DNA from: Lepidodermella squamata
Lineage: Eukaryota; Animalia; Gastrotricha
Reading direction: 5' to 3'
Assembly: GCA_047495785.1 (NCBI GenBank)
Contig: JBLDXI010000011.1
Span: 558,001-622,000 of the forward strand
Length of the DNA stretch: 64,000 nucleotides
The position numbers and the translations under genes were made by a program. Every line of letters starts with the position of its first letter. Positions within the stretch are counted from its first letter, which is position 1. The notes beneath the pieces were generated by a model. The model saw only the letters and a list, made by a program, of their open reading frames with translations, ran no database searches and was not told where the DNA came from. Shown piece after piece: positions 4,206 through 26,604 of this stretch.

Positions 4206-4712
4206 CTGCCCAAATTAGACTGCGAGATCCGATATTTGGAATTAGGATCCAAACCTTGGGTCTGTCGAAAAGTCCTTTTTCGGGTCAGCGCTGCGTCGTA
4301 GGGCAAAATGGCCGACGGCAAAGTGTAGGCCATGACCCGGCGGTTCTTTTGACACTTGACACCGAATTTAGGGCCAAAGACTTCAAGGAACGCACAGAAA
4401 TCAACTTGTAAAAACAGTGAAATTTCGATTGTTGCGCCATAATCTGGGTCTAATAATTAGGTCCAATTCTTGGGTCTCCTTTTTGGCTCTCATCCAAAAT
4501 TTCGACGTTTTTTCACCGTCATTATCAAAGACCTGCTCAGACCTTGAGTCCCCAAATTCGGTGTCAAAAGAACCGCCGGGTCATGGCCTACACTTTGCCA
4601 TCGGCCATTTTTCCCTACGACGCATCGTTGACCAGAAAAAGGGACTTTTCGACAGACCCAGGATTTGGATCCAAATATCTGATCTCGCAGTCAAATTTTG
4701 GCAGTTAAAGTG
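4198..4712. mobile_element. Non-autonomous piggyBac-like MITE with long TIRs and TTAA target duplication
   Basis: TTAA 4194-4197 and 4713-4716; termini CACTTTAACTGCC...GGCAGTTAAAGTG; imperfect inverted arms of roughly 170 bp. Confidence 0.88.
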
Positions 4713-5541
4713 TTAACGCGGTGGGGGCTCTTCTCTTTTTAGCCAAGACCCCTTTTCAGACCTTTTGACCAACCGGGGACGATCAGAATGAGGATAAAAT
4801 TATATCTACTGGGGTCTGGGGTTCCTGTTGGCACTTGGTACAGATCACGGGCGGAATTTTCTGAAAACCCTATAAATAAGGAAACATTCATGCATGATAA
4901 TGACTAAAATGGTATTATTCATACAAGAGTTTGCCTTGGATTACACCAGTTGGGCTTTTTCACGATTCTACGTGTTTTTCCAGCCAACTCGCATAAGAAA
5001 GTGACATCCGCGGCGGGACAGACTTCCGACCAAGCTCGCCAGGGAGGCGTCCTCGGCATTACTTTCAAGCACTGCTTATGGCTCATAAAATATTCATGCC
5101 ATTCATTTATTTGCTGTATTGTGGCTTTACCGATTTTCTCAGAATCATTTCTGTTGGTTTTAATTTGCTCTCAAATTTACATGTTTAACCACTAACTTCT
5201 TTAATAAATGGAAAATATAAAAGAATTTCGTTGTAGCCGTTTGTTCTTTCCATCATTTTAGCTTTCTTAACTCCGAGATTTCTATAGCTTTCAGTCCCTG
5301 TTTTCCATTTCGCAAGATGAGTAGCGAAATTACATAGTCACCGTTTATTATGACAAGCGGCTATTTTTGAAAGCGTCAAAACCATATCAGTGCGTAGGTT
5401 GGAAAGAACCCTTAGCCCGCGCTAGCTTCTTATCATCGTAATTAACGACTATAAACATTGGTGCTCAAATTATCTACTTACGTTAACTTGCATAGCCATA
5501 GCATCCTATTAATTTTGAGAAAATTCGTCAGCTGCTTGGAG

Positions 5542-8500
5542 ATGGCATCGCCCTACTCGTTCCGATCTATAGCTGAGTTCACGGACTTTACCCGTTTGTC
5601 GAGTAACTCCGAGAAACTCCTCCGAGGCATGTGACGTAGATAGGACGCCGCACTAAGAGGTTTTCGGACACGAAAAACTGAAGTCAGACTAATAAGGGGC
5701 AAAGTTCATCTTTTCAAATTTAATAAGATGAATCATCTCATTATTTTCCACCCAAATATTTCTCTTGCTATTTCTGTGTAATTTTGAGCAGATGGTGCCA
5801 TTTCATCAGCTTAGTTCATCTTTAAAGATGCATCTCCTCTTTGTTTCGTCTCGGAAACCGCGCCAAATCACTACTTTTTGCGATCTTCGAAACTTGAACT
5901 AATTAATTTTAAATTTTTAAATTTTAATTATTAAACAATTTCAAAATGAGCCCCACCATTTTATTTTTTTTAAGCTGCAAATTATTCTGAATATTAATGA
6001 GGAAAAAAGTGAACACGTCTTCTTGTCTTCTGGCGTGCTCTGAGTGCGGCGTCCTATCTACGTCACATGCTCCGAGGTGGATATTCATGCCAACGCAATG
6101 AGTGCTATCCTTACGAGTTTGTCATTAAAAAAGCTAATTTGACCAAGCTGCAGGAGGAATTCGAGAAAGACTTTGAAACAATCGCTCGACTTCTCCGCGA
6201 AAAAGTAAGGAATGTGCATATCTTCGACATGGCATCGTTTATGCTGATTTATCCTATTTTCAGGATTCGATGATGGTAAAAATTAACCATCCAAATATTG
6301 TCCGAGTATTTGGCACGTTCGAAGGTTCGGAAATCATTCTCTCACGTAAAACTCATCCACTCGATTTGTTTTAGAGGCATACCCGGTTAGTGACGTTGCT
6401 TGTTATAAGCACTCCATGCACCATTTGGTGATGGAGTTGTGCGGCGGTGGGAGTTTCGAAACTCTGATCAAAGCTGGAGGTGAGCCGATTCGCGAAGTTA
6501 GGCTTCAAAGTTGGTCTCGCCAGCTCGTTTCGGCTTTGCATTATCTACACAAGCGAGACATGGTACATGGCAACATTAGGCCAAGCAATATTCTGCTGTC
6601 GAAGAACCAAGGCACTGTGAAACTGGGAGAACTAGGAATAATGGAAACCTTTAATCCGTAAAGCCTCCAGTTTTGATTTTTAATCTAACTTCCATCCGTA
6701 ATATTTCAGAAAATCAAAAACGAGTTCTCTATCGCAAGAAATGCGTGACTATTGGCCACCTGAAGTATGGAATGGTGCGCGAATGTCACAAGCTGGTGAT
6801 GTCTGGTCGCTGGGTGTTACGCTTTACGAACTCGCAAACTGCATAAGACCAGTATGACATTGACAAAACCACAAAACCCTAAAAGTTTAGCATAATTTAT
6901 TTTACGTAGTTCGACCTAATGCACAAGGTCATGACGTAAGTCAAATTCAGTCTTACTGCTGCAAAGTGAAAAGTGTATCTTGGTGAAATTATTTCACATT
7001 TCGAGATAAGAAATAGTTCACTGTGCCTATAGCGCCGCCCGGCGGAGGGCCTATTATAAATAAAACTAACACATGCTGAGATAAGAAAGAGTTGGTGGCC
7101 ATGGCCCGTGGCATATATCCCAAGTCTATACGCGAAAACCGATAGACGAAATACCTAGAATGATTTAGTTTTCGAACTTAGTTATGGCTCGCGAATAAAC
7201 ACTCTTAACTTTGCAGCAGTCACCTGAAATAACTCAATCTCGAATCTGCCTTGTTTAGACGCGAAGCTCAGCCTTTCGACGAGTCTCGTGGTTATTCAAC
7301 ATATTTCCAAGAATTTGTAATGTCCATGCTAACTAAAAATGCCGAGGTTCGACCGAGAACTGATCAGCTTTTAAACGACAGATTTTTTCTAAACCAACCG
7401 ACGAAAAATGTGAGATTTTGCCAGATCGAAATGAGTATTACGACGGTGCTTTCTTCCTGTTTTTTTCAGGCGGATTCCTCCACAACACCTCAACCAGATG
7501 AAAAGACTGTTCAGGTATTGAATAAACTAACGCCGAGCAAACTGATGCGTTGATTTCACTTGACAGGAGTTATTTGACTGCGTGTTGGCGAAAGATGAGT
7601 CGAAATTAGTGGAGCTGCTGATGAACAGGGAGCTCGGTCTTAGCTCTTACTGCAGAAACGAATATGGGGCTACATTACTGCATATAGCTGCTATCAAAGG
7701 CTACAACGACATTGTGGAGATCCTTGTCAGGCAATTCAACGCCAATATTGAGGCAGCCCTTGAAAATGGCACTACACCATTGTACATCGCCGCCAACAAA
7801 GGCCAAATTGAGGTTGTGAAGACATTGGCTGGCGAGTTCAACGCAAACGTTGAGGCAGCTGATAATGAGGGACGAACACCCTTGTACGTCGCCGCCCTCC
7901 AAGGCCACGTCGAAGTTGTGAAGTCACTGGCTGGCCAATTTAACGCTAATGTTGAGTCAGCAGATAAAGATGGCTGCACACCATTGTACATTGCAGCCCT
8001 CCAGGGCCATGGCGAGGTGGTGAAAATACTTGCTGGGCAGTACAGCGCCAATGTAGAGGCAGCCGATGAAGTTGGACGTTCAACACTGTTCGTCGCCGCC
8101 TTGGAAGGCCACGTCGAGGTTGTGAAGACACTGGTTGAAAGGTTCAAAGCGAATGTTGAGGCGACCAACATAAATGGTGCTACACCATTGTTCATCGCCG
8201 CCAAGAATGGACAAGTCGAAGTTGTAAAGATTCTGGCTGGCCAGTTTAACGCCAACGTAGAGGCAGCCATTGACGATGGCGCCACACCGTTGTACATCGC
8301 CGCTGAGAATGGTCATGTCGAAGTTGTGGAAACACTAGCTGGCCAGTTCAGCGCCAATGTAGAAGCGGAAACCAAATTGGGTGCTACACCGTTGCACGCC
8401 GCCGCCTTTCAAGGCCACGTCGAGGTTGTGAAGGCACTGGCTGGTAGGTTTAAGGCAAATGTGGAGGCAGCCATTAACGATGGCGCTACGCCGTTGTACA

Positions 8501-9303
8501 TCGCTGCCGAGAATGGTCATGTCGAGGTTGTGGAGATACTAGCTGGCCAGTTCAACGCCAATGTAGAAGCCGCAGCCATATTGGGTGCTACACCATTGCA
8601 CGTCGCCGCTGTCAAAGGCCACGCCGAGATAGTGAAGACACTGGCTGGTAAGTTTAAAGCCAACGTTGAGGTGGTCAATGCGAATGGCGCTACACCACTG
8701 TACTTCGCCGCTTGTTTTGGCCACGTCGAAACTGTGAAGACGCTGGCTGGCGAGTTCAGCGCAAACGTCGAGGCTGCCTACAGAGATGGCACTAGGCCTA
8801 TACACGTTGCCGCCATCCAAGGTCACATTGAGGTGGTTAAGACATTGGCTGGTCAGTTCGGGGCCAATGTTGAGGCAGCCGATGGAGATGGTCGGACAGC
8901 ATTGTTTATCGCTGCAGAAAAAGGCCACGCCGAGGTGGTGCAGACACTCGCTTCCCAGTTTAAAGCGAATGTTGAGGCGGCCAATAAATGGGGCGCTACG
9001 CCACTGTACGTCGCCGCCGGCTTCGGCCACGCCGACTTGGTGAGGATACTGGCTAGCCAGTTTGGTGCCAATGTTGAGGCAAGGGGTGAAGATGGCCTCA
9101 GACCGTTAATGGCTGCTGCTTTATTCGGTCGACACGTAGTAGTTGATATGCTGATCAATGAATTTCGAGCTGGTGTCAACGCGGCCTGCAGTGAAGGACA
9201 TACCGCGCTGCATTATGCTAATAAGCATAACTGCTGTTTGCCTGTTGCAGACGAGGACAAGCGGAAAGTAATTGAAGTCCTGAAAAAGGCGAATGCTAAA
9301 TAA
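5542..9303 (+). CDS. NEK-like pseudokinase-ankyrin fusion (copy 2, 15 ANK units); exon 1 interrupted by a MITE
   Basis: MASPYSFRS...KLLRG|GYSC, HPNIVRVFG, HGNIRPSN instead of HRD, GELG instead of DFG, YWPPE, DVWSLG; same intron positions as copy 1; open ANK exon ~7567-9303. Confidence 0.75.
5628..6069. mobile_element. 442-bp MITE with ~32-bp TIRs and 8-bp TSD (hAT- or P-like)
   Basis: TSD CTCCGAGG at 5620-5627 and 6070-6077; TIR CATGTGACGTAGATAGGACGCCGCACT / AGTGCGGCGTCCTATCTACGTCACATG. Confidence 0.93.
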
Positions 9304-10228
9304 CAATGTAATTTGACGATTGCGAAAGATTTGATTTGATTTGATTTGCCATGGCGTTTTGGAAAATTTGATTTGAAATGATTGATTAAAGAAGACCTGT
9401 GATTTACTGAATAAATGAAGACAAATCAAAGTCTCTGCTGCATTCATTGATTTTTCCAATATCAAAATTCTGAAAAGCTGAACATTGATTTTTATTCTGT
9501 TTCTACCCGGTACTCAAATTTAAACGCTGATGTTGTCTCGGACTTAATCGCCAACGATATCTAGGGCTAAAAAGTGAAAAATGTCGAAGATGAATAACTA
9601 GGTTTCACTTGTTTGCGCTTGCTATCTATTTCGCAAGATAAAATAACATTTCTTGTGATAAACATTCATTTTGTAACTATCGAACTATATGTTGTTTCCC
9701 TAAAATTGTCGGGCTGCATTCTTTAGGGCGTAGCAGCTTGAAAATATATAATAAATAAATGAACCATATCAGTGGCTCAGGTTCAAAAGTTCGCTCGCTC
9801 TAGCGTCTTATCACTGTAACATAGAGAAAAAATTATAAAATGAGAAATAGGGTCACTTTGTTCTCTATGCACTGTAACCAACGGCATAAGGAGCATTGCT
9901 GTTGATATTACCCTGCTAATTTAGCTTATATAGATTATAGATCATGCCTTTTTTATTTTGAGAAACATCTTTAGCTGCTTGGAGATGACATCGCCTTACT
10001 CGGTTGTATCAATGGCCGAATTCACGGACGTTAAACCGTTGTTGCCCTACGAGAAACTCCTCAGAAACGGATATTCATGCCGACGCAATGGGTCCGAGTT
10101 TGTCATTAAAAAAACTAATCTGACCAAGCTGCGGAAGGAATTCGACGTTGAAACAATTACTCAACTTCTTCGCAAACAAATAAGGAATACGCCTTTTTTC
10201 ATTTGCATTCTCATTTTGTGCAAAACTA

Positions 10229-10749
10229 CCGTATATGCCGAATTAATATCCTGAGTATCTTATTGTTTCAAAACAACCAAAAAACGGGGGCTTATTCAGG
10301 CTGGGGTCCAAAAATGAGCTGGGGCACTATTTATTGCAATGTAAGTTTGAAGGTTCTTAGCACAAATAGAATCAGAAGAAATTGAAAGTTCATGAAATCA
10401 AATCCCAAATTTCATCGAATCTTTCATCGAAATTTCGTTTTTTTTCATCTTCTTCCGCGTTTTTTTCGATGATCAGGAAGATTTTCTTAATTTTCCTCGC
10501 CTTAAGAGCAAAGTTCTCAAGTTTTAGATGAATTATTTCTCGCAATTAATATTCGCAAACGATCTTTCGGCCAGTTACGGGGTTCGTAATTGAAAATTAA
10601 TGCAAAATATCATTGCGCGGTGTTTCAATTTGTGTCGCGGGCTGCAATTGTAGGCGTGGGTTCTTATTGTTTCAAACGACCTGAAAACTGGGGGCTTAAA
10701 CAGGCTGGGGAATTAAATTGAGTATGGGATAATAATTCGGCATATACGG
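10229..10749. mobile_element. Tc1/mariner-pogo-like MITE with TA target duplication
   Basis: TA|CCGTATATGCCGAATTA ... TAATTCGGCATATACGG|TA; internal subterminal direct repeat TTATTGTTTCAAA...GGGGGCTTA..CAGGCTGGGG. Confidence 0.85.
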
Positions 10750-11152
10750 TAATTTCACAGGTAGTTTTTTCTTCTCCTCTGCGTCTTCATTTGCGTTTTT
10801 CATTTTCTTACTCCTTTTATTAAAAGAAACCAAGAAAACTAAGACAACTAATTTTCGATGATTATGATTAAAATTAAAGCTCTTAATAATATTTATTCAG
10901 CGATTAAGTTGGCGGCGTCAGAGAAGACTATTTTATTTGAAAATCCAGCCTCAAAACCAGTTTATTTCCGGGGTACGTGTAACAAACAAAACCGATTGCT
11001 GCATGGTTCATGGTTGAAAACTTCGTGCCGAACATTTAATAAATCGAAGTGGCCCCTAATTTCGGCGGTTTTTTAAGCAATTAGTTCGGGATTTAGTTGG
11101 GACATATTTCTTATCGAAGAAAAACTTCAGCAAACAAATAAAAACGTTTACA

Positions 11153-11225
11153 GGCTGTGGGATTTGAACCCTTCTTCACGCGTTCCACGCCCAGGCTCTC
11201 ACACAACCTACTGTCTTGGCAATTG
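11153..11225 (-). other. tRNA-derived (Pol III B-box) fragment, possible SINE head
   Basis: Reverse complement contains GGTTCAAATCCCACAGCC; no full cloverleaf recognised. Confidence 0.3.
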
Positions 11226-12725
11226 TGATCGATTTTTTGCTACTTGACTTGTGCTCCCTAAACCCTAAGCGAATAATTGATTAAGCATCGAAAACTGAAA
11301 ACTGCGTTCGGATTGCTATTGAGAAGACTTGGATGTGGACATTTTATTGTTACGTCTATTATGTTGTTTTCAGGATTTGAGTATGATGAAAATTAAGCAT
11401 CCAAACATTGTCCGAGTATTTGGCACGTTCGAAGGTTCGTTTGATATGCGCTCACGTGAAACTCATCCCAAAATTGTATTTCAGAGGAATACCGGGGTGG
11501 TGACGTCGCTTGTTCTAAGCACTGGATGCACCATTTGGTGATGGAGTTTTGCGGGGGCGGGAGTTTCAAAACTCTGATCGAAGCTGGAGGTGAACCGATT
11601 CGCGAAGTTAGGCTTCGAAGTTGGTGTCGCCAGCTCGTCTCGGCTTTGCATTATCTACAAAATCGAGGCAGTGTCCATGGCAACATTAGGCCAAGCAATA
11701 TTCTGCTATCGAAGCACCATGGCACTGTGAAACTGGCAGAGTTGGGAATTATCGAAACCTTCGACACGTAATGCCATCAGTTCAGATGTGATGATTTTAC
11801 ATCAATTTTATCTGTAACATTTCAGAAAATCAAAAACTATTCTTCTATTACAAACAATGCGCAGCTATTTATCACCCGAAGTATGGGATGGTGCGCCTAT
11901 GTCAGAAGCTACTGACGTCTGGTCGCTGGGCGCTACGTTTTACGAACTTGCTAACTTCAAAAAACCTGTATGATATTTAATTAAAGTTGAAATTTGAGCA
12001 TAAATTATTTCAAATAGTTCGACCTAATGCACCAGATCCAGACGTAAGTCTAATTCAATCTGACCGCTGCAAAGGGAAAAGTACATCGAGGCAATTTTTT
12101 TGATATTAGCTCATAGGGGTGTTGGCCATGATATCCTAAGTCTATAGTCGAAGACCATTGGTCAAATTACATCACAATGACGGAGCTATCACGTACAGAC
12201 AGAGTTGTCCATGGGTCGGGTCTTCAATTATAGACCGAGGACAACTCTGCGTACATGAGACCTACGGTGTGATTCAAAAAGGTTGCCCACCGCATCATAT
12301 AGGCACGTGTTCTAATCTTGGCTTTAGCGGCCTTTCTGATTCACACTGTACTAGGAAGCTGGTGCTAGAATCCTCCCAACCAAAAATCTCTGGCTGGACT
12401 CCATAGAATTTTATAGATTTGTGGGATCGTTGCGAATAATCTAGCCACTAGACCATTGTTTTCCCCCGCGAGATTCATTCTACAGATCGTCGACTTATAG
12501 CAGCTGATCGTCGACTTAAAAAAACTGCAAATCTTCCACAAAATTAAATTTAAAATTTAAAACACTCTTTACGCATGTGTCACTGATATCAAATTTATGA
12601 TAAAGGTCATAAGAAAGTAGGATATTAAGGGTATGTCGAGAGCGTCCATCCAGCGTTGAGAAATTAAAATCTCAGCCGTTTATTAGTCAAGAGTTTAGAT
12701 TCGTCAAGATACTGCAAGTTACACT

Positions 12726-13064
12726 CATTGTGCTTGAGCTAAATAGTAGAATTTCTGCGGGCGCGCTGATTGGTCAATCGATCGTTGCTATGACTCCCGG
12801 ATGAAACATGTTTGTTGTGCGATCCATGAAATTTTTTGCAACAAGTGTTTTTTGCCGCAGTAAATTGCTACGATTATTACGGGGTTTACGCTCGTTGTCA
12901 ATGGAAACCGTGCAGCGGGTGTGGCAAGGTCATTTTTTGCATAAATACAAAATAATTTATCAGTGGATTGCACGACTAAATTGTTTTATCCCGGAGTCGT
13001 AGCAACAATAAATTAACCGATCAGCGCGCGGGTCAAAGTGCTACTTACTACTTGAAACACAATG
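12726..13064. mobile_element. Palindromic MITE in an intron of copy 3
   Basis: Termini CATTGTG...CACAATG; inverted arms CGCGCTGATTGGTCAAT..GTTGCTATGACTCCCGGATGAAACA; absent at the homologous position of copy 2 (ACACT|CTT). Confidence 0.7.
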
Positions 13065-15025
13065 CTTGCAGCGGTCAGTTGGATAATTTAATCTTGAATC
13101 TTTCTTGTTCAGAATTGAAGCTCATGGTTTCGACAAGTCTCGTGGTTATTCAAAAGATTGCCAGCAATTCGTAATGTCCATGCTAACGAGAAACCCCAAG
13201 GATCGCCCGAAAACTGATCGTCTCATAGAAAACAGCTTTCTACTGAAATCAACAGCGCAAAAGGTGAGATTTAACGGTTCCCAAACTTTCCGGTTTTTAT
13301 GACATGGTAGTTTCCTATGACCAGGCCTAGTAGGACAAGAGTAGGGCACCATTTAAAATATTGAAATTAGATTGGAAGATGGGAGAATTTTATAAGCTAA
13401 GGATTGCTTGTTAACCTTTTCATAGCGATATTATTTATATGCAGGAGAAAACATATTTTACAGCAGATCTAGAGGTTTTCAAAGGCCCTGATCCCAATTT
13501 TGAAATCCATTTGTCTTTATCTATCACCGTTAAGACTGCACGATAACTGGCCGATCTCGGCCTATCCGCCAAGCTTTTTTCAGGCGATTTTTTGAGCACC
13601 CTAATTTCCGTGTCTGGTGCTTCCAGTTTTAAAATTTTAGATTCTAAATTACTCCCATGAATGTACATGATTCTACCTCGCTTATATCATCGAAAAAAAT
13701 TCAGTTTAAAAAGAAGTTTTGGAGGCTTAGAATTCAGATCTGAATTAAGCTTTTCCAGTTTTTCTCGCGACAGTTTTTGCGGCACAAAAATCACGCACTC
13801 CGCCTGTTTAAGTTTTGGCGGATAGGACGAATTCGGATTTCCAACTCAAATCATTAAAACAGAGGTAAATGAGACAATGGAGGACACGGCGGTATTTTTT
13901 GTTGAATCAAAAAATGATCGGAAACCTATGGATTATCTAGTTTAACCAAATCATAATTCTAATCTCAGGTTGGCTATTTTCAAATTGCTAATATGCCTTG
14001 GCCACGCAAGATAACGGTGTCCTGGTCTCAAAACCTTGTAGCCAGAATTAAAATAGAATATTCCTCAAAAGACCGATCAAGATTTCATCAAATTCAATTT
14101 TCTGCGAATTCTTAAAGTCGAAATTTAAAGATATCAACCATTTACTCATGTTATAAGCATACAAATATGGAACAATTTTAAGACAAATGTCATTGGGGAA
14201 TGTTTGTTTTTTTAAATTAAATTACCAAAAATGACAAAAGCGAGTGTTTTCTAGACATTACTTTTGGTGATTTTGGGGGTGTTAAGGGCTCGCCGTGATT
14301 GTGTCCATTCTGAAAGCATTGCGTTTCTTCAGGCCACAACGAACATATCACGACAACCGTACGAAAACGATGTTCAGGTATTGAATGAAGGAACGTAGAA
14401 CAAATTGAAAAGTTGATAGTGGTTATGCTTTACAGAAGTTATTTGCCTGCATGCGGGCGAATGATGTGTCGAAATCAGTGGAGCTGTTGGCGAACCCGAA
14501 GCTCCGTCTTGGCGCTGACTGCAGAGACACAGATGGAAAGCCTTTACTGCACATCGCCGCCCAGAATGGCCACGTCGAGATGGTGGAGACACTGGCTGGC
14601 GAGTTCAACGCCGATGTTGACGCAGCCGACATACTTGGCCTAACCCCGTTAATGGTTGCTGCATCATTCGGCCGATACGCAGTAGTCGATACTCTGATAA
14701 ATAAATTTTTTGCAGATGTCGACGCGGCAAGCAGTAAAGGATCTAATGCTCTGTACTATGCTCATTACTGCTCTACACGTGTTAAAGCCGAGGACAAGCG
14801 AAAAACAATTACACGCACTCGTTTCACGCCTACACAATAAAAGCTATACTACTGCGGTCTAGTTTTTTGTTCATTCACAAGAGGTTTTCGATTTCAAACA
14901 GCACCTCTATTTCTTATAATTGTTTTAATGCCAATCTATTCTCTGAGTTTTCTTAAAATCGTTTTTTTCAATTCAAAATCGGGATTTAGGATTTCACAAT
15001 TTGTGGGCAATTTCTTTTTAGGAAA

Positions 15026-15445
15026 ATGTCTAAGCATGAATCCGGCTCTCTGAAACGAAAAGAGAAGCGAGAGATGAGGCCGATTCAAACTTTCTTTCAA
15101 AAGTTCCAACATCATTCGCATTTGGCTTCGCTAATCTAGCCCCGCTTTCCGATGCTAATAATGAAGTCGACGTTGAACCTCAAAATAACCAATTCGAAAT
15201 TCCATCCAATCTGAAACTGGAGGTGGTGAATCAATTGAGTCCATTACAGTTAATTTAGATGACCCTTTCTTTTGGTCGCCAAATGACGCCGAGGCTTTTT
15301 TTAGAAAAGGAATTTCATCTGTTCACAAAGCCACCACTGCCAACATCGATTTTAATGCAACGAAAAGAAGTTTCGGAAACTTTTCTCGTGCTTTAACTCC
15401 TGAAATGCTGCGTTCATGTTTGCCTAATGGCGAGGAGGCGCCTTG
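15026..15445 (+). pseudogene. Possible degenerate N-terminus of a hAT (ZMYM1/TTF-type) transposase
   Basis: MSKHESGSLKRKEKR..IQTFF, LDDPFFW and CLPNGEE in shifting frames resemble hAT N-termini; recognition by eye only. Confidence 0.3.
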
Positions 15446-16239
15446 AAATTATTTGATTTTCTTTGAAATTATTTTGATTTGATTTTGATTTGATCTTCAC
15501 AAATGCTTTTTTGCTCCGTTTGCAAGTTATTTTCGGATAGCGCCAATATTTTGATGTTATAGCACCCGTAACCCGAGTGAAATAAGGAATCCCGAGCATG
15601 AAATTCGGACATACAAGGACTGCAAAAGCCTCATACCCATACGCCAATGAATAACTGGAAATGGGCCACTATCTTCAAAATTCAAGGAAGTTCAAGGGAA
15701 AATGGAAATTTCAACATTTCGATATTTGGAAAAATTGATTCTCAAAATGTCAGCAAATTTTCTACGTTTAATTCGCAAAGAAAAATGTCATTCTCCACTG
15801 TGACTGCTAAATATAAAACGGCTACGACGATGTACTGAGATGTATTGACGTTATTTCCCCGCCGCGAGTGAGAAAGTCCAACGCATTGCCTCTAACGGAT
15901 CTTTTCAAATCGTGGGCGGTTGCGAAGCGGCAGATAAAGGAAGCGAAAAGTCCGTTTTTTAGGAAAAAGATTTTTCTTATAACTTACGGCCCGTTTACTT
16001 TTCTTATCGCAGTCTTATCGCGTTGGAACCCCATCTAATCGACTAAAACAAGACTAATCATCAACAACAGGATGATTAGGATAAAGCCGACACATGTCGG
16101 AGGTGACGTCTGGCGTATAAAAGCAGTTCCAATCTAAAATATTTCGCTTCAAACTTTCAACTTAGGATGTACATTCCCGAAAGATTTTTTTCACTGCATT
16201 CACTTTTGCTTTTGCGTAGATCGCGCCTTTTAATATCAA

Positions 16240-18676
16240 GAAACTTCTTTAGCTGCTTGGAGAACTGATCAGCTTGCAAACGATAAATTTCTACTGCACC
16301 CGACAGCGAAAGAAGACATGATGGTGAGATCAGATCAGGAGGATGAGTATGATGCATTCCTCCATCTGTTTTTCAGGCGGACTCCTCTGCAACCAAAACA
16401 CTACCACAGCCAGATGAAAAGGCTGTTCAGGTATTGAATGAACTAACGTCGAAAAAACTGATGCGTTGATTGTGATTATACTTGACGAACTCGCGAACAA
16501 TAGAAGACCAGTATGTCATCGGCTTGACGTTGAAACTTTTGCGTAATTCAAGTATTTTATGCAGTTCGATCCAACGCACATGATCTTGACGTGAGTCACG
16601 GTTCAATCTGGAATAACTAAATTTTAAATATGTATTGCGTAGACTTGAAGCTCAGCCGTTCGACGCGTCTCGTGGCTATTCAACAAATTTCAAGGAATTC
16701 GTAATGCTTATGCTAACTAAAAGCGCCGAAGATCGACCTAAAACTGATCAGCTGTCAAATAACAGTTTTCTGCTGAAAGATGTGAGATTTCAGGTCAGAT
16801 CAGGATTAGGAATACAATGGTGTTTTTTCAGGTCAATTCCTCGACGACAACAGTTCCTCAACCGGACGAAAAGGCTGTTCAGGTATTGAATGGGGAAATG
16901 TCGAACAAACTGATCTTATTGCGTGATTATACTTGACAGGAATTGTTTGAAAGCGTGCGGGCGAACAATGGCTTAAAATTACAGGAGATGCTGATGAACA
17001 GGGAGCTCGGTCTTAGCTCTGACTGCATAAACAAAAACGGGGCTACAATACTGCATCTTGCTGCTCTTAGTGGCTACAACGGCATTGTGGAGATCCTAGT
17101 CAGGCAATTCAACTCGAATGTTGAGGTAGCCCTAAAAAATGGCGCTACGCCATTGTACGTCGCCGCCCTTCAAGGCCACACTCAGGTGGTAAAGACACTA
17201 GCTGGCGAGTTCAACGCAAACGTTGAGGCAGCTGATAATGATGGACGAACACCATTGTACGTCGCCGCCCTCGAAGGCCACCTCGACGTCGTAAAGATCC
17301 TGGCTGGCCAATTTAACGCTAACGTCGAGTCAGCAGATAACGAAGGCTATACGCCAGTATATGTCGCCGCCTTCGAAGACCATGACGAGGTGGTGAAGAC
17401 ACTTGCTGGCCAGTACAAGGCCAATGTAGAGGCGGCCGATGAAGACGGACGTACGCCATTGTGGATCGCCGCCGCGAAAGGCCACGTCAAAGTTGTGGAA
17501 ACACTAGCTGGCCAATTTAACGCCAATGTTGAGTCAGCAGATAAAGATGGCGCAACACCATTGTACGTCGCCGCCTTCGAAGGCCACGTCGAGGTTGTGA
17601 AGACATTGGTTGACAAGTTCAAAGCGAATGTTGAGGCAGCGAATATGAATGGCGCTACACCATTGTTTATCGCCGCCAAGAATGGGCAAATCGAGGTGGT
17701 AAAAACATTGGCTGGCGAGTTGAAAGCAAACGCGGAGGCAGCCCTTAATGATGGCGCCACACCGTTGTACATCGCTGCCGAGAATGGCCATGTCGAGGTT
17801 GTGGAGACACTGGCTGGCCAGTTCAACGCCAATGTTGTAGCGGCAACCATATTGGGTGCTACACCATTGCACGTCGCCGCCATCCAAGGCCACGTCGAGT
17901 TAGTGAAGACACTGGCTGGTATGTTTAAAGCCAATGTTGAGGTGGTCAATGCTAATGGCGCTACGCCACTGCACTGCGCCGCCTGTTTTGGCCACGTCGA
18001 AACTGTGAAGACGCTGGCTGGCGAGTTCAGCGCAAACGTCGAGGCAGCCGTGAAAAATGGCGATAGGCCTATACACGTTGCCGCCATCCAAGGTCACATC
18101 GAGGTGGTTAAGACATTGGCCGGCCAGTTCGGGGCGAATGTTGAGGCGGCCAATAACAATGGAGCTACACCATTGCACTTCGCCGCCCAGGAGGGCTACG
18201 TCGAACTCGTAAAACTGCTGGCTGGTCAGTTCGGGGCCAATGTTGAGGCAGCCGATGGAGACGGCCGGACAGCATTGTTTATCGCTGCAGAAAAAGGCCA
18301 CGCCGAGGTGGTGCAGACACTGGCTTCCCAGTTTAAAGCCAATGTTAAAGCGGCCAATAAATGGGGCGCTACGCCACTGTACGTCGCCGCCGCCTCCGGC
18401 CACGCCGAGGTGGTGAGGACACTGGCTAGCCAGTTTGGTGCCAATGTCGAGGCAGCCTGTGAAGATGGCCTCAGACCGCTAATGGCCGCTGCGTTATTCG
18501 GCCAACACGTAGTGGTCGATATGCTGATCAATGAATTTCGAGCTGATGTCAACGCGGCCTGCAGTGAAGGACATACCGCTCTGCAGTATGCTAATAAGCA
18601 TAACTGCTGTTTGCCTGTTGCAGACGAGGACAAGCGGAAAGTAATTGAAGTCCTGATAAAAGCGAATGCTAAGTAA
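16240..18676 (+). pseudogene. Rearranged kinase-ankyrin copy 4: most of the kinase deleted, intact 15-unit ANK exon (~16940-18676)
   Basis: Pre-ATG sequence AGCTGCTTGGAGA joined directly to GAGAACTGATCAGC (kinase end); second jump at ~16485 into sequence near-identical to 20771-21300; 577-aa open ANK frame resembling copy 2. Confidence 0.75.
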
Positions 18677-19925
18677 CTGAGCCACAAATGCGCATTATTT
18701 GTCATTTTCAGAATCATTTGCACAGATCGTTGATTTTACGTTTTCCTGCTAATTTCATTATAATAAGAGTTCATTATCAGAGTTGACCATCAGCTCAGAG
18801 CCGACATCGATTCAAAGTATCGATTTTTATTGATTTCGCCAATAATATAAAAATTATTGAAGGCCAAACATTGCAGTTTTTACGCAGCTAATGGGATCCC
18901 AAGTAGCTAAAAAAGGCCTGGGACACAGGAATAATCGGAATCATCCGGATTTCACAAAAAGAAATCACGAAAACAAATTATACCAGCATGCGGGCACTCC
19001 AGATTTCTGAGATGCCGATTTGGAATATGAAACGGCGTTGGATGTAAAGGATGAAAGGGATAGATGTAAGGGACTCAGACACGAAGGAGTGACGATCCCC
19101 GACTCTGACTAAGATTCTTACGGAGTTGAGAGCCCCTAGGTTGGGGCAAGAGTCGACCTGACCCGGCTAGACCTCAGAAAGTTTCCCAAGTCTAATTGAT
19201 GTTCAACCCCACTACAAACGGAATATCATCGACGTCATGATCCTCGATGTGGTTTGCTACCCACTCCTTCGCTTCGGCGGCATTCAAAGAACTATAGTTT
19301 CTTACGAGCGAGTCGTCTTGTCAACCTTTGACTTTGTCGCGGTGCTTTTGCAAGGCTTTTGTGGTACGTGAAATTATGAACCTGTTTCAGCGACAGCTTT
19401 GCTTTCTCTTGGAAACAGTCAATTCAATTTGGACAAGGTGTATTATGGTTGTCTGTTGAATGCACAGTTCAATGCTCAAGGCGCTGCATCAACGCTCAGA
19501 CGGACAAGGTCTGCAGCTTTTTCCTAACGCGCTTGAATCGTATCCGTTAAGTGAAAGATGGAATAATTATTGTTCATTCCTAGGCTGGTCAAGGTGGAGA
19601 CGCTGTCAACATCGTTGATTCAGATGAAGCGTCAGTTAACTTCAACGGATGTTTCCCGATAAATTATTAATTTTCACTTTTCACCGCTTGCGTTCTATTT
19701 CGCAAGATGAATAATAAAAACCCATCATTGCTTTGTAACACGGGACAAATTTCTCAAATATAGAAAGTCATATCAGCGGCAAGACGCCTCCGCCCTTGCT
19801 TGCTTCTTATCATCGAAACCAGCGGCAAGAAAAATTGGTGCTGATAGTATTGTCTACTATCTTTCACTTACATAGCACCGGCTTTATTGCCCTTAATTTT
19901 GAAGAAGTTCTTCACCTGCTCAGAG

Positions 19926-22754
19926 ATGGCATCGCCCTACTCGTTTGGATCAATGGCCGAGTTCACGGACGTTAGGCCGTTGTTGCTCAACGAGAAACTC
20001 CTCAGGAACGGATATTCGTGCCGACGCAATGCGTGTTACCCTTTCGACTTTGTCATTAAGAAAACTAATATGACCAGGCTGAAGAAGGAATTCGAGCAAG
20101 ACTTTGAAACAATTTCCCAGCTTCTCCGCGAAAAAGTGAGGAATTCATCCATTTTCAAGATCATTGGACTGCTAACAACTCGCCTTTCACTTCGTTTTCA
20201 GGATTCGAGAATGGTCAAAATTAACCACCCAAACATTGTCCGAGTATTTGGCACGTCGAAGGTTCGCTTGTAATGCGCTCACGTAGAACTTGCCAACAAT
20301 ATTGTTTCAGAGGAAAACCAGGGTGGTGAAGTCGCTTGTTTTAAGCACTCCATGTACCATTTGGTGATGGAGTTTTGCGGGGGCGGGAGTTTCGAAACTC
20401 TAATCAAAGCTGGCAAAGCTGGAGGTGAACCGATTCGCGAAGTTACGCTTCAAAGTTGGTCTCGCCAGCTCGTCTCGGCTTTGCATTATCTACACAGCCA
20501 AGACATTTTACATCGCAACATTAAGCCGAGCGATGTCCTGGTTTCGCAGAATCAAGGCACTGTGAAACTGGCAGAGTTAGGAATAATGGAAACTTTAAAT
20601 ACGTAAAGCCATCAGTTTGGAGTTTTAATCGAAATTCCAGCCGTAATATTTCAGAAAATCAAAAACAACTCCTCTATGGCAATCAATGTACGGCTATTTG
20701 CCTCCTGAAGTATGGAAAGGTGGATCCCTGTCACAAGCTGGTGACGTCTGGTCGCTGGGTGCTACGCTATACGAACTCGCGAACAATAGAAGACCAGTAT
20801 GTCATCGGCTTGACGTTGAAATTTTTGCGTAATTCAAGTATTTTATGCAGTTCGATCCAACGCACATGATCTTGACGTGAGTCACGGTTCAATCTGGAAT
20901 AACTAAATTTTAAATATGTATTGCGTAGACTTGAAGCTCAGCCGTTCGACGCGTCTCGTGGCTATTCAACAAATTTCAAGCAATTCGTAATGCTTATGCT
21001 AACTAAAAGCGCCGAAGATCGACCTAAAACTGATCAGCTGTTAAATAACAGTTTTCTGCTGAAAGATGTGAGATTTCAGGTCAGATCAAGATTTGGAATA
21101 CAATGATGTTTTTCAGGTCAATTCCTCGACGACAACAGTTCCTCAACCGGACAAAAAGGCTGTTCAGGTATTGAATGGGGAAATGTCGAACAAACTGATG
21201 GGCTTATTGCGTGATTATACTTGACAGGAATTGTTTGAAAGCGTGCGGGCGAACAATGGCTTGAAATTAGAGGAGTTGCTGATGAACAGGAAACTCGGTC
21301 TTCGCTCTGACTGCAGAAACATTGATGGGGTGCCTTTGCTGTTCCTCGCCGCCTACAATGGCTACGTCGAGGTTGTGAAGCTTCTAGCTGGCCAGTACAA
21401 GGCCAATGTAGAGACAGCCACGAATGATGGCAGAACACCATTTTGGACCGCCGCCTTCAATGGCCACGTCGAGGTTGTGAAGCTTCTAGCTGGCGAGTAC
21501 AAGGCCAATGTTGAGGCAGCCATGAATGATGGCAGAACACCATTGCTCGTCGCTGCCTACAATGGCCACGTCGAGGTTGTGAAGCTTCTAGCTGGCGAGT
21601 ACAAGGCCAATGTTGAGGCAGCCACGAATGATGGCGCTACACCATTGTTCGCCGCCGCCCAACAAGGCCACGTCGAGGTTGTGAAGCTTCTAGCTGGCGA
21701 ATTCAAGGCCAATGTAGAGACAGCCATGAATGATGGCGCTACACCATTGCACGTCGCCGCCTACAATGGCCACGTGGAGGTTGTGAAGCTTCTAGCTGGC
21801 CAGTACAAGGCCAATGTAGAGACAGCCATGAATGATGGCGCTACACCATTGCACGTCGCCGCCTACAATGGCCACGTGGAGGTTGTGAAGCTTCTAGCTG
21901 GCGAGTACAAGGCCAATGTTGAGGCAGCCATGAATGATGGAGCTACACCATTGCACGTCGCCGCCCAGGAAGGCCACGTCGAGGTTGTGAAGCTTCTAGC
22001 TGGCCAGTACAAGGCCAATGTTGAGGCAGCCATGAATGATGGCAGAACACCATTGCTCGTCGCTGCCTACAATGGCCACGTCGAGGTTGTGAAGCTTCTA
22101 GCTGGCCAGTACAAGGCCAATGTTGAGGCAGCCATGAATGATGGCAGAACACCATTGCTCGTCGCTGCCTACAATGGCCACGTCGAGGTTGTGAAGCTTC
22201 TAGCTGGCCAGTACAAGGCCAATGTTGAGGCAGCCATGAATGATGGCAGAACACCATTGCTCGTCGCTGCCTACAATGGCCACGTGGAGGTTGTGAAGCT
22301 TCTAGCTGGCGAGTACAAGGCCAATGTAGAGACAGCCATGAATGATGGAGCTACACCATTGCACGTCGCCGCCCAGGAAGGCCACGTCGAGGTTGTGAAG
22401 CTTCTAGCTGGCCAGTACAAGGCCAATGTTGAGACAGCCACGAAAAATGGCAGAACACCATTGTGGACCGCCGCCCAGGAAGGCCACGTCGAGGTTGTGA
22501 AGCTTCTAGCTGGCGAGTACAAGGCCAATGTTGAGGCAGCCACGAATGATGGCGCTACACCATTAATGGCCGCAGCATATAACGGCCAACACGCAGTAGT
22601 CGACACACTGATAAATGAATTCCGCGCAAATGTCAACACGGCCCGCAATGATGGACAAACCGCTCTGAATTTTGCTAACAATTGCTTGCCTCGTGTTACT
22701 ACCGAGAACAAGCGGAAAACAATCGAAATTCTCGCGAAGGCGAATGCAAGATAA
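19926..22754 (+). CDS. NEK-like pseudokinase-ankyrin copy 5 (13 highly homogenised ANK units); 1-bp deletion in exon 2
   Basis: HRNIKPSD, AELG, YLPPE, DVWSLG; exon 2 (20202-20261) is 60 nt versus 61 nt in copies 1-3; other splice sites canonical; open 507-aa ANK frame. Confidence 0.7.
21325..22650 (+). repeat. Coding 102-bp tandem repeat (ankyrin units), with three identical copies at 21972-22277
   Basis: Unit GGCCACGTCGAGGTTGTGAAGCTTCTAGCTGGC...GCCTACAAT recurs at 21972, 22074 and 22176. Confidence 0.95.
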
Positions 22755-24012: not shown

Positions 24013-26604
24013 ATGACAACGGCTCTTTCGCAGGATTATTCGAATTTTATCAAATCAGCATGCGGGCAGGAAGTTAGACTTCAGGCCTTGGGGCTAAGGA
24101 ACAGCTATTTAGCTAACAGTTCCCTCAGCCATTCAGCCCTCAACGAGCTGCTACTGCCGTTTCGCAAAAATCTCGACTCGTTCTTCCTCGTTGCTATGGG
24201 CTACTTTAATTACCGTAATCCTTTCAAAACTGTAACTGTACGTTATTTAAATTTCGATTTTTCTCAAGATATGAATATCGGCTTCATGCTGGTTGAAGTT
24301 GGACTGGTGCGGAAGAAAAATGCGACTAATACGCTGGTAAAAAACGCAACTTTCGGATGTAAGTTCGGATGTTTGGCTGATTTTTTGGATCGTCGAAAAA
24401 TAGAATTCGAGCTTGGGATAAATTCAATAAAAAATTCCCCAAGTCGGGAAAATTCTCAATTTAATTTTTTTTTTAGGCACAAAATTCCTAAATTCTGGAT
24501 TTCGGAACCGAACTGTTACCGACGGCCAATTTACCAGTTATACTTTTTTCGGAGCAAATATCGATTTTCGGTATCGATTTCAAAAATCAGTGATTTTTCC
24601 GATTTCTCGCATTTTTAAATATCAAGGGCATATTCCATATACTTCAATTTTTAAAATTTAAAATTTTAAAATAATTTGAACAGGTGGGCTAAAAATTTAA
24701 TTCTGAACTGATCAGCAATTTGATTTTTAAATTAATAAAAATTCGAAATTCCACTTCGATTTACAGTTTCTTATTCTTCGATTTTTGAGATTTTATGATT
24801 AATTTTGTAATTTTTTAGTCGTTCAAGCTTTGGCGTTTTTCGCCATCGGTTTCGGGCTCGGATTCGGCGATAGCTACAACAACGCGATAGGAACATCTTG
24901 GTTCGGCTTCAAACGAAACCCAGAAAACCCAGATTTCGCGTTATGGCTCTTCGAATACGCGTTTGCTGGAACCGCCGGCGCCATCGTGACGGGTTCCATC
25001 GCTGAACGCTGCCAACTAGCCGGCTATTTGATATACATTTTCTGGACAGCGGCCTTCACGTACCCTATGGTGGTTAGTTGGGCGTGGAACTCGGATGGCT
25101 GGCTGAAACTGGGCGGCGTCTACGAGTTCCAGGATGGAACCACTCAGCGGATTGGGTACCTGGATTTCGCTGGCTCGGGGGTTGTCCACCTTTCTGGTGC
25201 TACTTCAACAATAAGTGAGAAAAAATTTAAGTATTTCAAAAATATTAAAAAATCGTAGCTGACATTTTATTTTCATTTTTCAAAAATGTTATTCAAAAAT
25301 TCGTAATAATTTTTTTTTAATTCACAAAAATTACGGGAATCGATGTGATTAATTTGCAGTTTACCTGTTGTTTCTTGGTCCTCGAATTGGTCGGTTCAAA
25401 TCGAACGGCGAGTCGGTGGAATTTCCAGTTCGAGACTGGCCAATCGTTACATTCGGCGCCATGATTTTATTCACCGGTTTCCTCGCCTTCAATTCTGGAT
25501 CTCAGTTATCGATAAGCCGACTCGAAGACTATTCACCCGTGGCTAAAGCTACGGCTAATACATCAATAACATCATCAGCCGGATTTCTATTCGTCTTACT
25601 CGTATACAGGTATTTTGAATTTTGATTTTTTGAAAAATTTCAATTTTCCAATATTTAGGATTTCCAAATTTAAATCAGTTCGAAAAATTTCAATTGGAGA
25701 ATTTTTTTCAAGTTCTAATTTCAAAACTAAAATTATTTCGATAGTAATGCAATTTTAAAATTTCAAAAATCCAAATTTCAATTTTCTCAACAATTAATTT
25801 TATTTCGCAGATTTTATTATCGAAAATGGTCGTTGAGAGGTTCAATCGGGGGCGGTTTGACGGCCTGTGTAGCCAGCTGTTGTTCGGCCAACATTGTCGA
25901 AGGCTACGGCGCCTTCGCCATCGGAATTCTAGGCGGCCTCATGTACATTTTCATGATGTGGCTCCTCGTGAAATGCCGAATCGACGACGCAGCCGATGCC
26001 GTTCCAAGTTTGCTTGAATTCCACTTTCGTCCATCAATTTTATTTCAATTTTATTTTCAGTACATTGGGGAGGTGGATTTGTCGGAGTTTTAGCCGAAGC
26101 TTTTCTGAAACCTGATAGAGGAATCCTATACAATTGGGACCAAGCTTCAGGATACGTAAGTTTTCAACTTTTGGATTTCCCCAAATTTTTTAGAATTTTA
26201 TTTAAATTTATAAATTTTCCAAATTTGAAAATTATGATTTGAAATTTTATTTTCATGATTATTTTCATTTCTAAATTTTATTCTATTAGGTCCTAGCTTG
26301 GCAAGTGTTGGGAATGGTTGTAATCATGGTTTTCTCATCCGCCTCAACCTATTGCCTATGCGTAATCCTAAAAGCGTTCAATTTAATGCGGGTCGATCGC
26401 GAAACCGAACTCGAAGGCCTCGACATAGGCCACGGCCATGAAGAATGCTTCCAGACCGAAAAAACGCTGCTAGACACGCTATCAGAGGAAGATCTCATCA
26501 TAAACGGGCCGAAAATGCCGTGGCCTAAGTTGAGCAATGGCAACGATTGGTGCCTGGCGGATCTGAGCCGAATTTCAACGGCTTTCCGAATGAATGACCC
26601 ATAA
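24013..26604 (+). CDS. amt: Ammonium transporter paralog B, 7 exons (approx. 24013-24214, 24269-24358, 24819-25214, 25360-25609, 25811-26007, 26061-26155, 26290-26604)
   Basis: MNIGFMLVEVG, FEYAFAGTAGAIVTGSIAER, DFAGSGVVHLSG, LGPRIGRF, FLAFNSGS, IDDAADAVPIHWGGG, RVDRETELEGLD. Confidence 0.92.

Follow-up and report, generated by a model that had tools for sequence, protein, structure and literature searches.

Single lesions and open ankyrin exons in a tandem array of kinase-ankyrin genes of the gastrotrich Lepidodermella squamata

The kinase-ankyrin array and its subfamily

The window analyzed here, a stretch of 64,000 nucleotides from the gastrotrich Lepidodermella squamata (assembly GCA_047495785.1, contig JBLDXI010000011.1, positions 558,001 to 622,000 of the forward strand), contains an array of five same-strand genes, each encoding a kinase domain and ankyrin (ANK) repeats, that lies between two ammonium-transporter gene pieces located at 4-408 (a piece recognized by a Pfam match) and 24830-25258. 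An initial annotation of the window reported that copies 2-5 of this array each carry a different lesion toward the 5' end while their ANK exons stay open, and proposed that these exons might be maintained as a reservoir for gene conversion or shuffling, expressed independently, or spliced to the kinase of another copy. The analysis presented below confirms each of the reported lesions, as well as the openness of the ANK exons, but demonstrates that the kinase exons located downstream of the lesions are equally open. Copies 2-5 are complete genes that have taken one hit each, and not promoterless cassettes.

The ANK repeat unit measures exactly 102 nt in all five genes of the array. Pfam searches matched Ank families on every ANK exon and Pkinase on exon pieces of copy 1, and copies 2-5 can be aligned through the kinase core to copy 1 and to the paralogs described below; judged by these matches and alignments, the array genes each appear to unite a kinase fold and ANK repeats within one spliced gene. 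Copy 1, a diverged member of the array whose kinase core is approximately 42% identical to that of copy 5, encodes an active-looking kinase in which both HRD and DFG are retained, and was used as a local control only. All paralogs, and likewise copies 2, 3 and 5, instead have HGN or HRN at the HRD position and (A/G)ELG or a similar sequence at the DFG position, and the subfamily to which copies 2-5 belong is, from these motifs, predicted to have a catalytically dead kinase.

At least 150 kinase-core matches were found in the genome (a 121.2-Mb assembly of 151 contigs), and 11 close paralogs were retrieved and aligned: three from contig 29, six from contig 40 (one of which lacks the kinase part), and two from contig 17. 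Together with copies 2-5 these genes compose the 15-member subfamily considered here, 13 members of which carry a kinase part. The intact paralog C40b, which possesses eight exons, is fully open, and contains exclusively GT-AG introns, served as the reference gene model and was mapped onto every copy (Table 1).

Table 1. Features of the kinase-ankyrin array and exons of the reference gene model. Positions are those of the window.
Feature	Position	Strand	Description
Copy 1	1983-4205	+	Kinase with HRD and DFG, about 8 ANK repeats; Pfam Pkinase and Ank matches
Copy 2	5542-9303	+	Exon 1 in two parts, 5542-5627 and 6078-6204; exons 2-7 within 6264-7514; ANK exon 7567-9303; mapped to C40b
Transposable element in copy 2 exon 1	5628-6069		442 bp; 33-nt inverted ends (97%); perfect 8-bp target duplication
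Copy 3	9985-14840	+	8 exons, 1,308 nt, all open and in frame; ANK exon 14436-14840
Copy 3 intronic dispersed repeat	10227-10751		96% identical to relatives
Copy 3 intronic dispersed repeat	10751-11263		About 72% identical to relatives
Copy 3 intronic dispersed repeat	12724-13066		About 95% identical to relatives
Copy 3 intronic dispersed repeat	13410-14125		About 80% identical to relatives
Copy 4	16250-18676	+	Rearranged; TAG acceptor 16250-16252; remnant to 16430; ANK exon 16940-18676, of copy 2 type
Copy 4, hypothetical path		+	Exons 7', 5, 6, 7 and ANK: ATG 16318, 16377-16430, 16565-16590, 16643-16781, 16832-16882, 16940-18676; all GT-AG
Copy 5	19926-22754	+	8 exons; exon 2 20202-20261; ANK exon 21228-22754
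C40e lesion			Exon 1 fused to end of intron 7; ANK exon open
Reference exon 1			210 nt
Reference exon 2			61 nt
Reference exon 3			271-292 nt
Reference exon 4			142-151 nt
Reference exon 5			26 nt
Reference exon 6			About 139-163 nt
Reference exon 7			45-54 nt; phase 0 at both ends
Reference exon 8			Variable length; single long ANK exon with phase-0 start

A different lesion in each of copies 2-5

Exon 1 of copy 2 is interrupted by a miniature inverted-repeat transposable element (MITE) that is flanked by the target duplication CTCCGAGG at 5620-5627 and 6070-6077, and that places an in-frame TGA at 5632-5634. Once the element and one target duplication are removed, exon 1 measures 213 nt and is open, while exons 2-8 as they stand form one open frame in which all introns are GT-AG. 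The element has the inverted ends, the 8-bp duplications (seen at three sites), and the many short copies of a MITE: its family comprises at least 40 genomic copies of approximately 440 bp, with no frame longer than 56 codons on the strand read. Two other copies, located at C54:86749-87190 and C43:137727-138168, are 100% identical to the element in copy 2 (0/442 differences), and both have unrelated flanks and 8-bp duplications of their own. These flanks and duplications indicate that the three copies are independent recent insertions, and the absence of any difference from two independent insertions in turn indicates that the insertion into copy 2 is very young. With at least three identical copies at unrelated sites, the MITE family has been mobile very recently, and an autonomous partner may still be active. 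Removal of the element as a GC-AG intron, which would excise the 450 nt at 5627-6076 and restore the frame, was considered and judged unlikely given that the candidate acceptor is a GAG with a poor pyrimidine tract, unlike the TTTCAG or TTTTAG acceptors usual in this subfamily.

Exon 1 of copy 3 runs to 10179, after which intron 1 opens with AT at 10180-10181, the position at which GT is found in copies 2 and 5 and in all 10 paralogs with a kinase part, consistent with the GT-to-AT donor change reported for this copy. Introns 1, 5, and 6 have been expanded to approximately 1.1-1.2 kb by repeat insertions (Table 1), as compared to 45-260 nt in most paralogs, and the ANK exon consists of only 2-3 repeats. 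Copy 3 also displays the most changes at invariant residues among the copies compared, and these are distributed unevenly: exon 1 has changes or deletions at 6 of 27 residues that are otherwise invariant, versus 4 of 86 in exons 2-6. A candidate frameshift in the C-terminal tail was ruled out, as the tail is of the same length with its last nine codons substituted.

Copy 4 is the only truncated member of the four, and the loss of its kinase involved two junctions, both of which show a few bases of microhomology. At the first, 16263/16264, everything from the start codon through the middle of exon 6 is gone; at the second, near 16486, a remnant of exons 6'-7' is fused to copy-5-like sequence beginning partway through exon 4. 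The tract at 16485-17033, which begins at the end of exon 4 and takes in the first 95 nt of the ANK exon, is 96.7% identical to copy 5; beyond it the ANK exon belongs to the copy 2 type, a resemblance that breaks off exactly with the stop codon. Copy 4 still has the TAG acceptor found ahead of the start codon in most paralogs, and from this acceptor a hypothetical frame can be followed through a 65-nt, ATG-free leader to ATGATG at 16318 and on through 670 codons with no internal stop, along a path composed entirely of GT-AG introns (Table 1). An ANK-rich product of copy 4 is, on the basis of this frame, conceivable. The suggestion of an independently expressed ANK product stands, in weakened form, for copy 4. 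A second member without a kinase part, C40e (C40:138183-139054), consists of a decayed exon 1 remnant joined to the last 20 nt of intron 7; its ANK exon is open for 237 codons, and its exon 1 lies in a different frame.

The lesion in copy 5 is the smallest of the four. Exon 2 measures 60 nt, as opposed to 61 nt in the 12 other genes (12/12), one T of a TT pair having been lost at approximately 20255, and the canonical frame consequently stops at codon 109. With a placeholder N at the gap, the coding sequence is open throughout. On the natural sequence, use of the second AG of a CAGAG at exon 3, which would move the acceptor 2 nt downstream to 20313, restores the full frame.

Whether some of these lesions are artefacts of amplification or assembly, specifically a template-switch chimera in copy 4 and a consensus error in copy 5, has to be weighed against the way in which the genome was probably sequenced. 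A published assembly of L. squamata (122 Mb, 157 contigs, heterozygosity 2.987%) was built with 83x HiFi coverage from one animal amplified by multiple displacement amplification, a procedure in which chimeras form at short homologies (PMC11660948), and microhomology is indeed present at both copy 4 junctions. An artefactual origin is nonetheless very improbable. At 83x coverage the authors of the assembly found no chimeric contig (PMC11660948), the base missing from copy 5 belonged to a TT dinucleotide and not to a long homopolymer, the MITE is accompanied by a perfect target duplication, and the change in copy 3 is a plain transition. In addition, the copy-5-like tract in copy 4 has diverged by 3.3% from copy 5 and is therefore an old genomic segment, not a fresh chimera.

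Single lesions are also a feature of the subfamily at large. Among the 15 genes, seven carry exactly one lesion (copies 2-5; C40c, with a TAG in exon 2; C29b, which lacks 1 nt near the start of its ANK exon; and C40e), seven are intact-looking, one (C17a) was left unscored, and none was seen with two.

Intactness, age, and exchange of ankyrin sequence

Together the ANK exons of copies 2-5 amount to 5,406 nt, close to the 5.3 kb first estimated, and are free of in-frame stops, compared to 5-45 stops in each of the alternative forward frames. As previously noted, all four exons start at a phase-0 acceptor, such that cross-copy splicing would stay in frame. The dead-kinase exons, however, are open as well, including exons 2-7 of copy 2, exons 1-7 of copy 3, and, save for the missing base, exons 1-7 of copy 5. 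Copies 2, 3, and 5 have lost neither the upstream acceptor nor the start codon, all eight of their exons are present, and 41 of their 42 splice sites are canonical. Since the kinase part beyond each lesion, splice sites included, has been preserved just as well as the ANK exons, the two show no difference in preservation that would call for an explanation, and the premise that ANK exons have been kept while the 5' parts decayed is not supported.

Divergence was estimated by pairwise Nei-Gojobori (NG86) comparison, supplemented by counts of codon differences from two sister copies. The kinase exons of copies 2, 3, and 5 show synonymous divergence (dS) of 0.31-0.37, with ratios of nonsynonymous to synonymous divergence (dN/dS) of 0.40-0.58. 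Between the ANK exons of copies 2 and 4, dS declines from 0.43 in the 5' block to 0.16 in the 3' block, and dN/dS is approximately 0.3 overall and 0.11 at framework positions. The comparison of dN/dS between kinase and ANK parts that had been recommended as a check yields pairwise values below 1 for both. The share of substitutions that would create a stop is approximately 2.8% for the ANK exons and 4.2% for the kinase exons; with indels assumed to occur at 0.05-0.15 per substitution, 5.4 kb of neutrally evolving ANK sequence would stay open with P >= 0.05 only up to approximately 0.4-0.8% divergence. Neutral decay over the divergence separating the copies would accordingly have produced tens of disruptions per gene, indicating that the hits are recent relative to the copies themselves. 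These estimates indicate that the copies have been under purifying selection for nearly their whole history and that either the hits are recent or the downstream part has remained under selection despite them.

Counts of private codon changes, nonsynonymous to synonymous, were 21:13 for copy 2, 26:10 for copy 3, and 17:9 for copy 5, while the corresponding ratios in other paralogs, which likewise derive from small counts, ranged from 0.5 to 8. Approximately 0.9 kb of the copy 5 ANK exon (units within 21513-22430) is 98-100% identical to a sister unit, with units 6 and 7 sharing all 102 nt (100%) and several others at 98-99%, as compared to 71-91% identity within the arrays of copies 2 and 4. 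Such near-identity indicates that unit amplification in copy 5 was very recent and that this sequence is too young to be informative. Scoring of individual repeats against a repeat profile built from intact paralogs was tried and, being biased toward the training genes, was not used as a measure of decay.

Exchange of ANK sequence between copies is shown by three separate comparisons. The first two, described above, are the copy-5-like tract within copy 4 and the drop in dS between copies 2 and 4. The third involves C40b (C40:115224-117486), which is intact, and the lesioned C40c (C40:119573-121839), for which ANK dS is 0.026 while kinase dS is 0.27, a pattern that points to a conversion event, recent and restricted to the ANK exon, in which an intact and a lesioned gene took part. 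From these comparisons, germline conversion or unequal crossing-over of ANK exons is real and includes lesioned copies. As far as the sequences indicate, such exchange would represent the ordinary concerted evolution of a tandem family, and it can help to keep the ANK exon of a lesioned copy open.

The same observations bear upon the proposal that the lesioned copies serve as dedicated donor cassettes, in which the ANK reservoir would be copied, somatically or in a programmed fashion, into an expressed acceptor gene. Exchange involving the intact and lesioned pair C40b/C40c, the 3' block of copies 2 and 4, and the copy 4/copy 5 tract would be expected of such a system, as would the phase-0 acceptor common to all ANK exons. 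The proposal is nevertheless highly improbable. The copies are full genes with an upstream acceptor of their own, seven introns, and intact dead-kinase exons; their lesions look young, and the ANK exons are kept no better than the rest. Moreover, the lesion of C29b falls within its ANK exon, no one gene stands out as the acceptor (copy 1 is diverged, with ANK units 77-82% identical to those of the others), and the exchange tracts are germline tracts of a size and age ordinary for a tandem family. What stands of the original proposal is germline exchange between copies, along with the conceivable ANK-rich product of copy 4; special upkeep and cassettes of the VLR or VSG type are not supported. 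In its broadest form, namely that lesioned copies constitute a standing reservoir of ANK binding surfaces that is copied into expressed members, or that is read out alone through leader addition at the phase-0 ANK acceptor, the idea would amount to cassette-style diversification of a family of intracellular binding proteins, and here too we consider the chance of its being correct to be slight indeed.

Chicken pseudo-V genes, the variable lymphocyte receptors (VLR) of lampreys, and the variant surface glycoproteins (VSG) of trypanosomes are conversion-donor systems. The present array resembles them in its tandem, variable, repeat-coding segments, in the exchange of sequence from copy to copy, and in the presence of some copies without a full product. 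In contrast to those systems, it is composed of full genes with their own 5' end, introns, and one young lesion, and the assembly sequence on which this comparison was made shows no sign of an acceptor locus, of truncated cassettes, or of a somatic process. A VLR/VSG-like cassette system is not supported, and an attractive reading of the locus is thereby removed, given that intactness extends beyond the ANK exon to the entire gene, with one young hit as the sole exception.

Proposed young null alleles and possible bypass of the hits

The explanation that we favor, with confidence that is about evenly balanced, is that the lesioned copies are young, single-hit null alleles within a fast-turning-over tandem family of dead-kinase-ANK genes whose members exchange ANK sequence by ordinary germline conversion. 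Under this explanation, each copy would have been struck once, recently and independently of the others: by the insertion of a MITE that is currently active in copy 2, by a G-to-A change in a splice donor in copy 3, by microhomology-mediated deletions that fused two gene remnants in copy 4, and by a 1-nt deletion in copy 5. The ANK exons would be open for the reason that there has been too little time for a second hit anywhere in these genes, and their sequence would be renewed by unequal crossing-over within the repeat arrays and by conversion between neighbors, with no specially kept reservoir. The sequenced animal was probably a single individual, heterozygous at approximately 3%, and the hits would most likely be null alleles that lie on the haplotype assembled here and are sheltered by its counterpart in a clonal animal; no near-identical second copy of the array is present in this assembly. 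Relative to the intact paralogs, copies 2-5 each bear a lesion predicted to be disabling, as befits single-hit pseudogenes, and the hits would accordingly be presumed to inactivate their genes, to be heterozygous, and to have placed those genes beyond further selection. In a one-parameter neutral model in which 15 genes decay for approximately 0.3% divergence, the probability of no double hit among the seven lesioned genes is approximately 0.09, a tolerable fit, and sheltering by a second haplotype would provide a regime of this kind.

Several observations weigh against this explanation. Four of the five point lesions in the subfamily fall in exon 1, its donor, or exon 2, which together make up 10-20% of each coding sequence, and such clustering has a probability of 0.002 under uniform hits, although it was noted post hoc and with n = 5. 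No second hit is found in approximately 12 kb of coding sequence of the lesioned copies, such that all seven hits must be very young. Copy 3 combines four intronic insertions, two of which are only 70-80% identical to their relatives, and a decaying exon 1 with exons 2-8 that are clean. Lastly, copy 4 retains a complete path of acceptor, ATG, and open frame.

A bypass is conceivable for each of the clustered lesions, and bypass of the hits is a serious alternative, although one that we regard as less likely than not. By analogy with leader addition in a flatworm, it proposes that exon 2 onward, or the ANK-rich part of copy 4, is still expressed and under selection through addition of a leader at an internal acceptor, in a genome that appears to add a spliced leader at acceptors, yielding N-terminally shortened dead-kinase-ANK or ANK-rich proteins. 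The routes would differ from copy to copy: in copy 5, the acceptor 2 nt downstream, with which the gene is fully open; in copy 3, trans-splicing at exon 2, from 11374, or an in-frame cryptic donor located 51 nt downstream at 10231; and in copy 4, the retained TAG acceptor with its ATG-free leader and long open frame. Three of the four clustered point lesions lie upstream of a methionine in exon 2 that is conserved in 13 of 13 genes with a kinase part, no second hits are found downstream, and in copy 3 the altered invariant residues are concentrated in exon 1. Similarly, a (T/C)AG is located 10 nt before the ATG in most paralogs, and the contig of the array carries leader-like units in multiple copies in which a conserved stretch of approximately 30 nt is followed by GTATGT. 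In the flatworm Schistosoma mansoni, leader addition at internal acceptors is frequent (PMC5832876). That system resembles the present one in providing a route to N-terminally shortened products, here suggested by the leader-like genes and by the acceptor situated just before start codons, but for the dead-kinase-ANK genes the mechanism is by analogy only.

The case for bypass is tempered by features of the individual copies. The second acceptor of copy 5 is weak (GAG-type), as is the alternative donor of copy 3 (GTATAT); exon 1 of copy 2, with the MITE in it, would continue to undergo cis-splicing and contains numerous ATGs; and the deletion in copy 5 is located downstream of the exon-2 methionine. 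The clustering on which the argument draws was derived from five lesions and noticed afterwards, and in-frame paths are fairly common by chance, exons 7', 7, and the ANK exon of copy 4 all having phase-0 starts. Searches for the 3' end of the leader joined to a subfamily 5' untranslated region returned no match in the animal's own genome (at up to two mismatches) or in metagenome contigs, and a search of the literature returned no paper on leader addition in gastrotrichs. Poly(A) hexamers, found after copies 2 and 5 only, are uninformative.

The leader-like units lie at C11:1405001-1414000, where five are found, near 491, 1558, 4066, 4717, and 7384, each with a conserved stretch of approximately 30 nt ending in TCTAAG. 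In four of the five this stretch is followed by GTATGT, like that of spliced-leader RNA genes, while the unit near 4717 continues with unrelated sequence.

Word searches of a public protein collection were made with parts of copy 2. For its ANK exon the best matches were generic ANK proteins with no more than 53% identity, while its exon 3, and the last 169 residues encoded by its ANK exon, returned no match in these word searches. The searches covered three length ranges of public proteins, and the absence of the subfamily from them says nothing either way on expression.

Tandem families evolving by birth and death, such as the olfactory receptor, NLR, and KIR-type arrays, display segregating null alleles together with interlocus gene conversion. 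The young null alleles proposed here would fit this description in a number of respects, including the same-strand tandem arrangement, the divergence of copies under selection, the variable repeat number, the single disabling hit in about half of the subfamily, the exchange tracts between neighbors, and the recent amplification of repeat units. The array differs in being built of a dead kinase fused to ANK repeats in a gastrotrich genome, and in the clustering of lesions in exons 1-2, which the birth-and-death model does not predict. With respect to architecture, and not to kinase class, a likeness can also be drawn to Giardia, in which a Nek kinase-ankyrin expansion consists mostly of catalytically dead members (PMC3218828): in both cases a large, lineage-specific expansion of kinases or dead kinases is joined to ANK arrays of variable length. 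The lineages are unrelated, however, and the genes described here are spliced, tandem, and composed of eight exons.

Should the proposal of young null alleles be borne out, it would raise the question of whether a very large dead-kinase-ankyrin family is shedding members fast in a clonal, highly heterozygous animal. Should the hits in exons 1-2 instead be tolerated through internal leader addition, they would furnish a concrete example of trans-splicing buffering damage to the 5' end of genes, and ANK proteins without a kinase would be real products of the family.

Two further features of the window lie outside the coding sequences. An imperfect palindrome of approximately 525 bp, 75% identical to its own reverse complement, is located at 4193-4717, right after the copy 1 stop. 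Additionally, the spacer preceding copy 4 contains an 83-nt stretch (15552-15634) that shares 89% identity with 1298-1380, upstream of copy 1.

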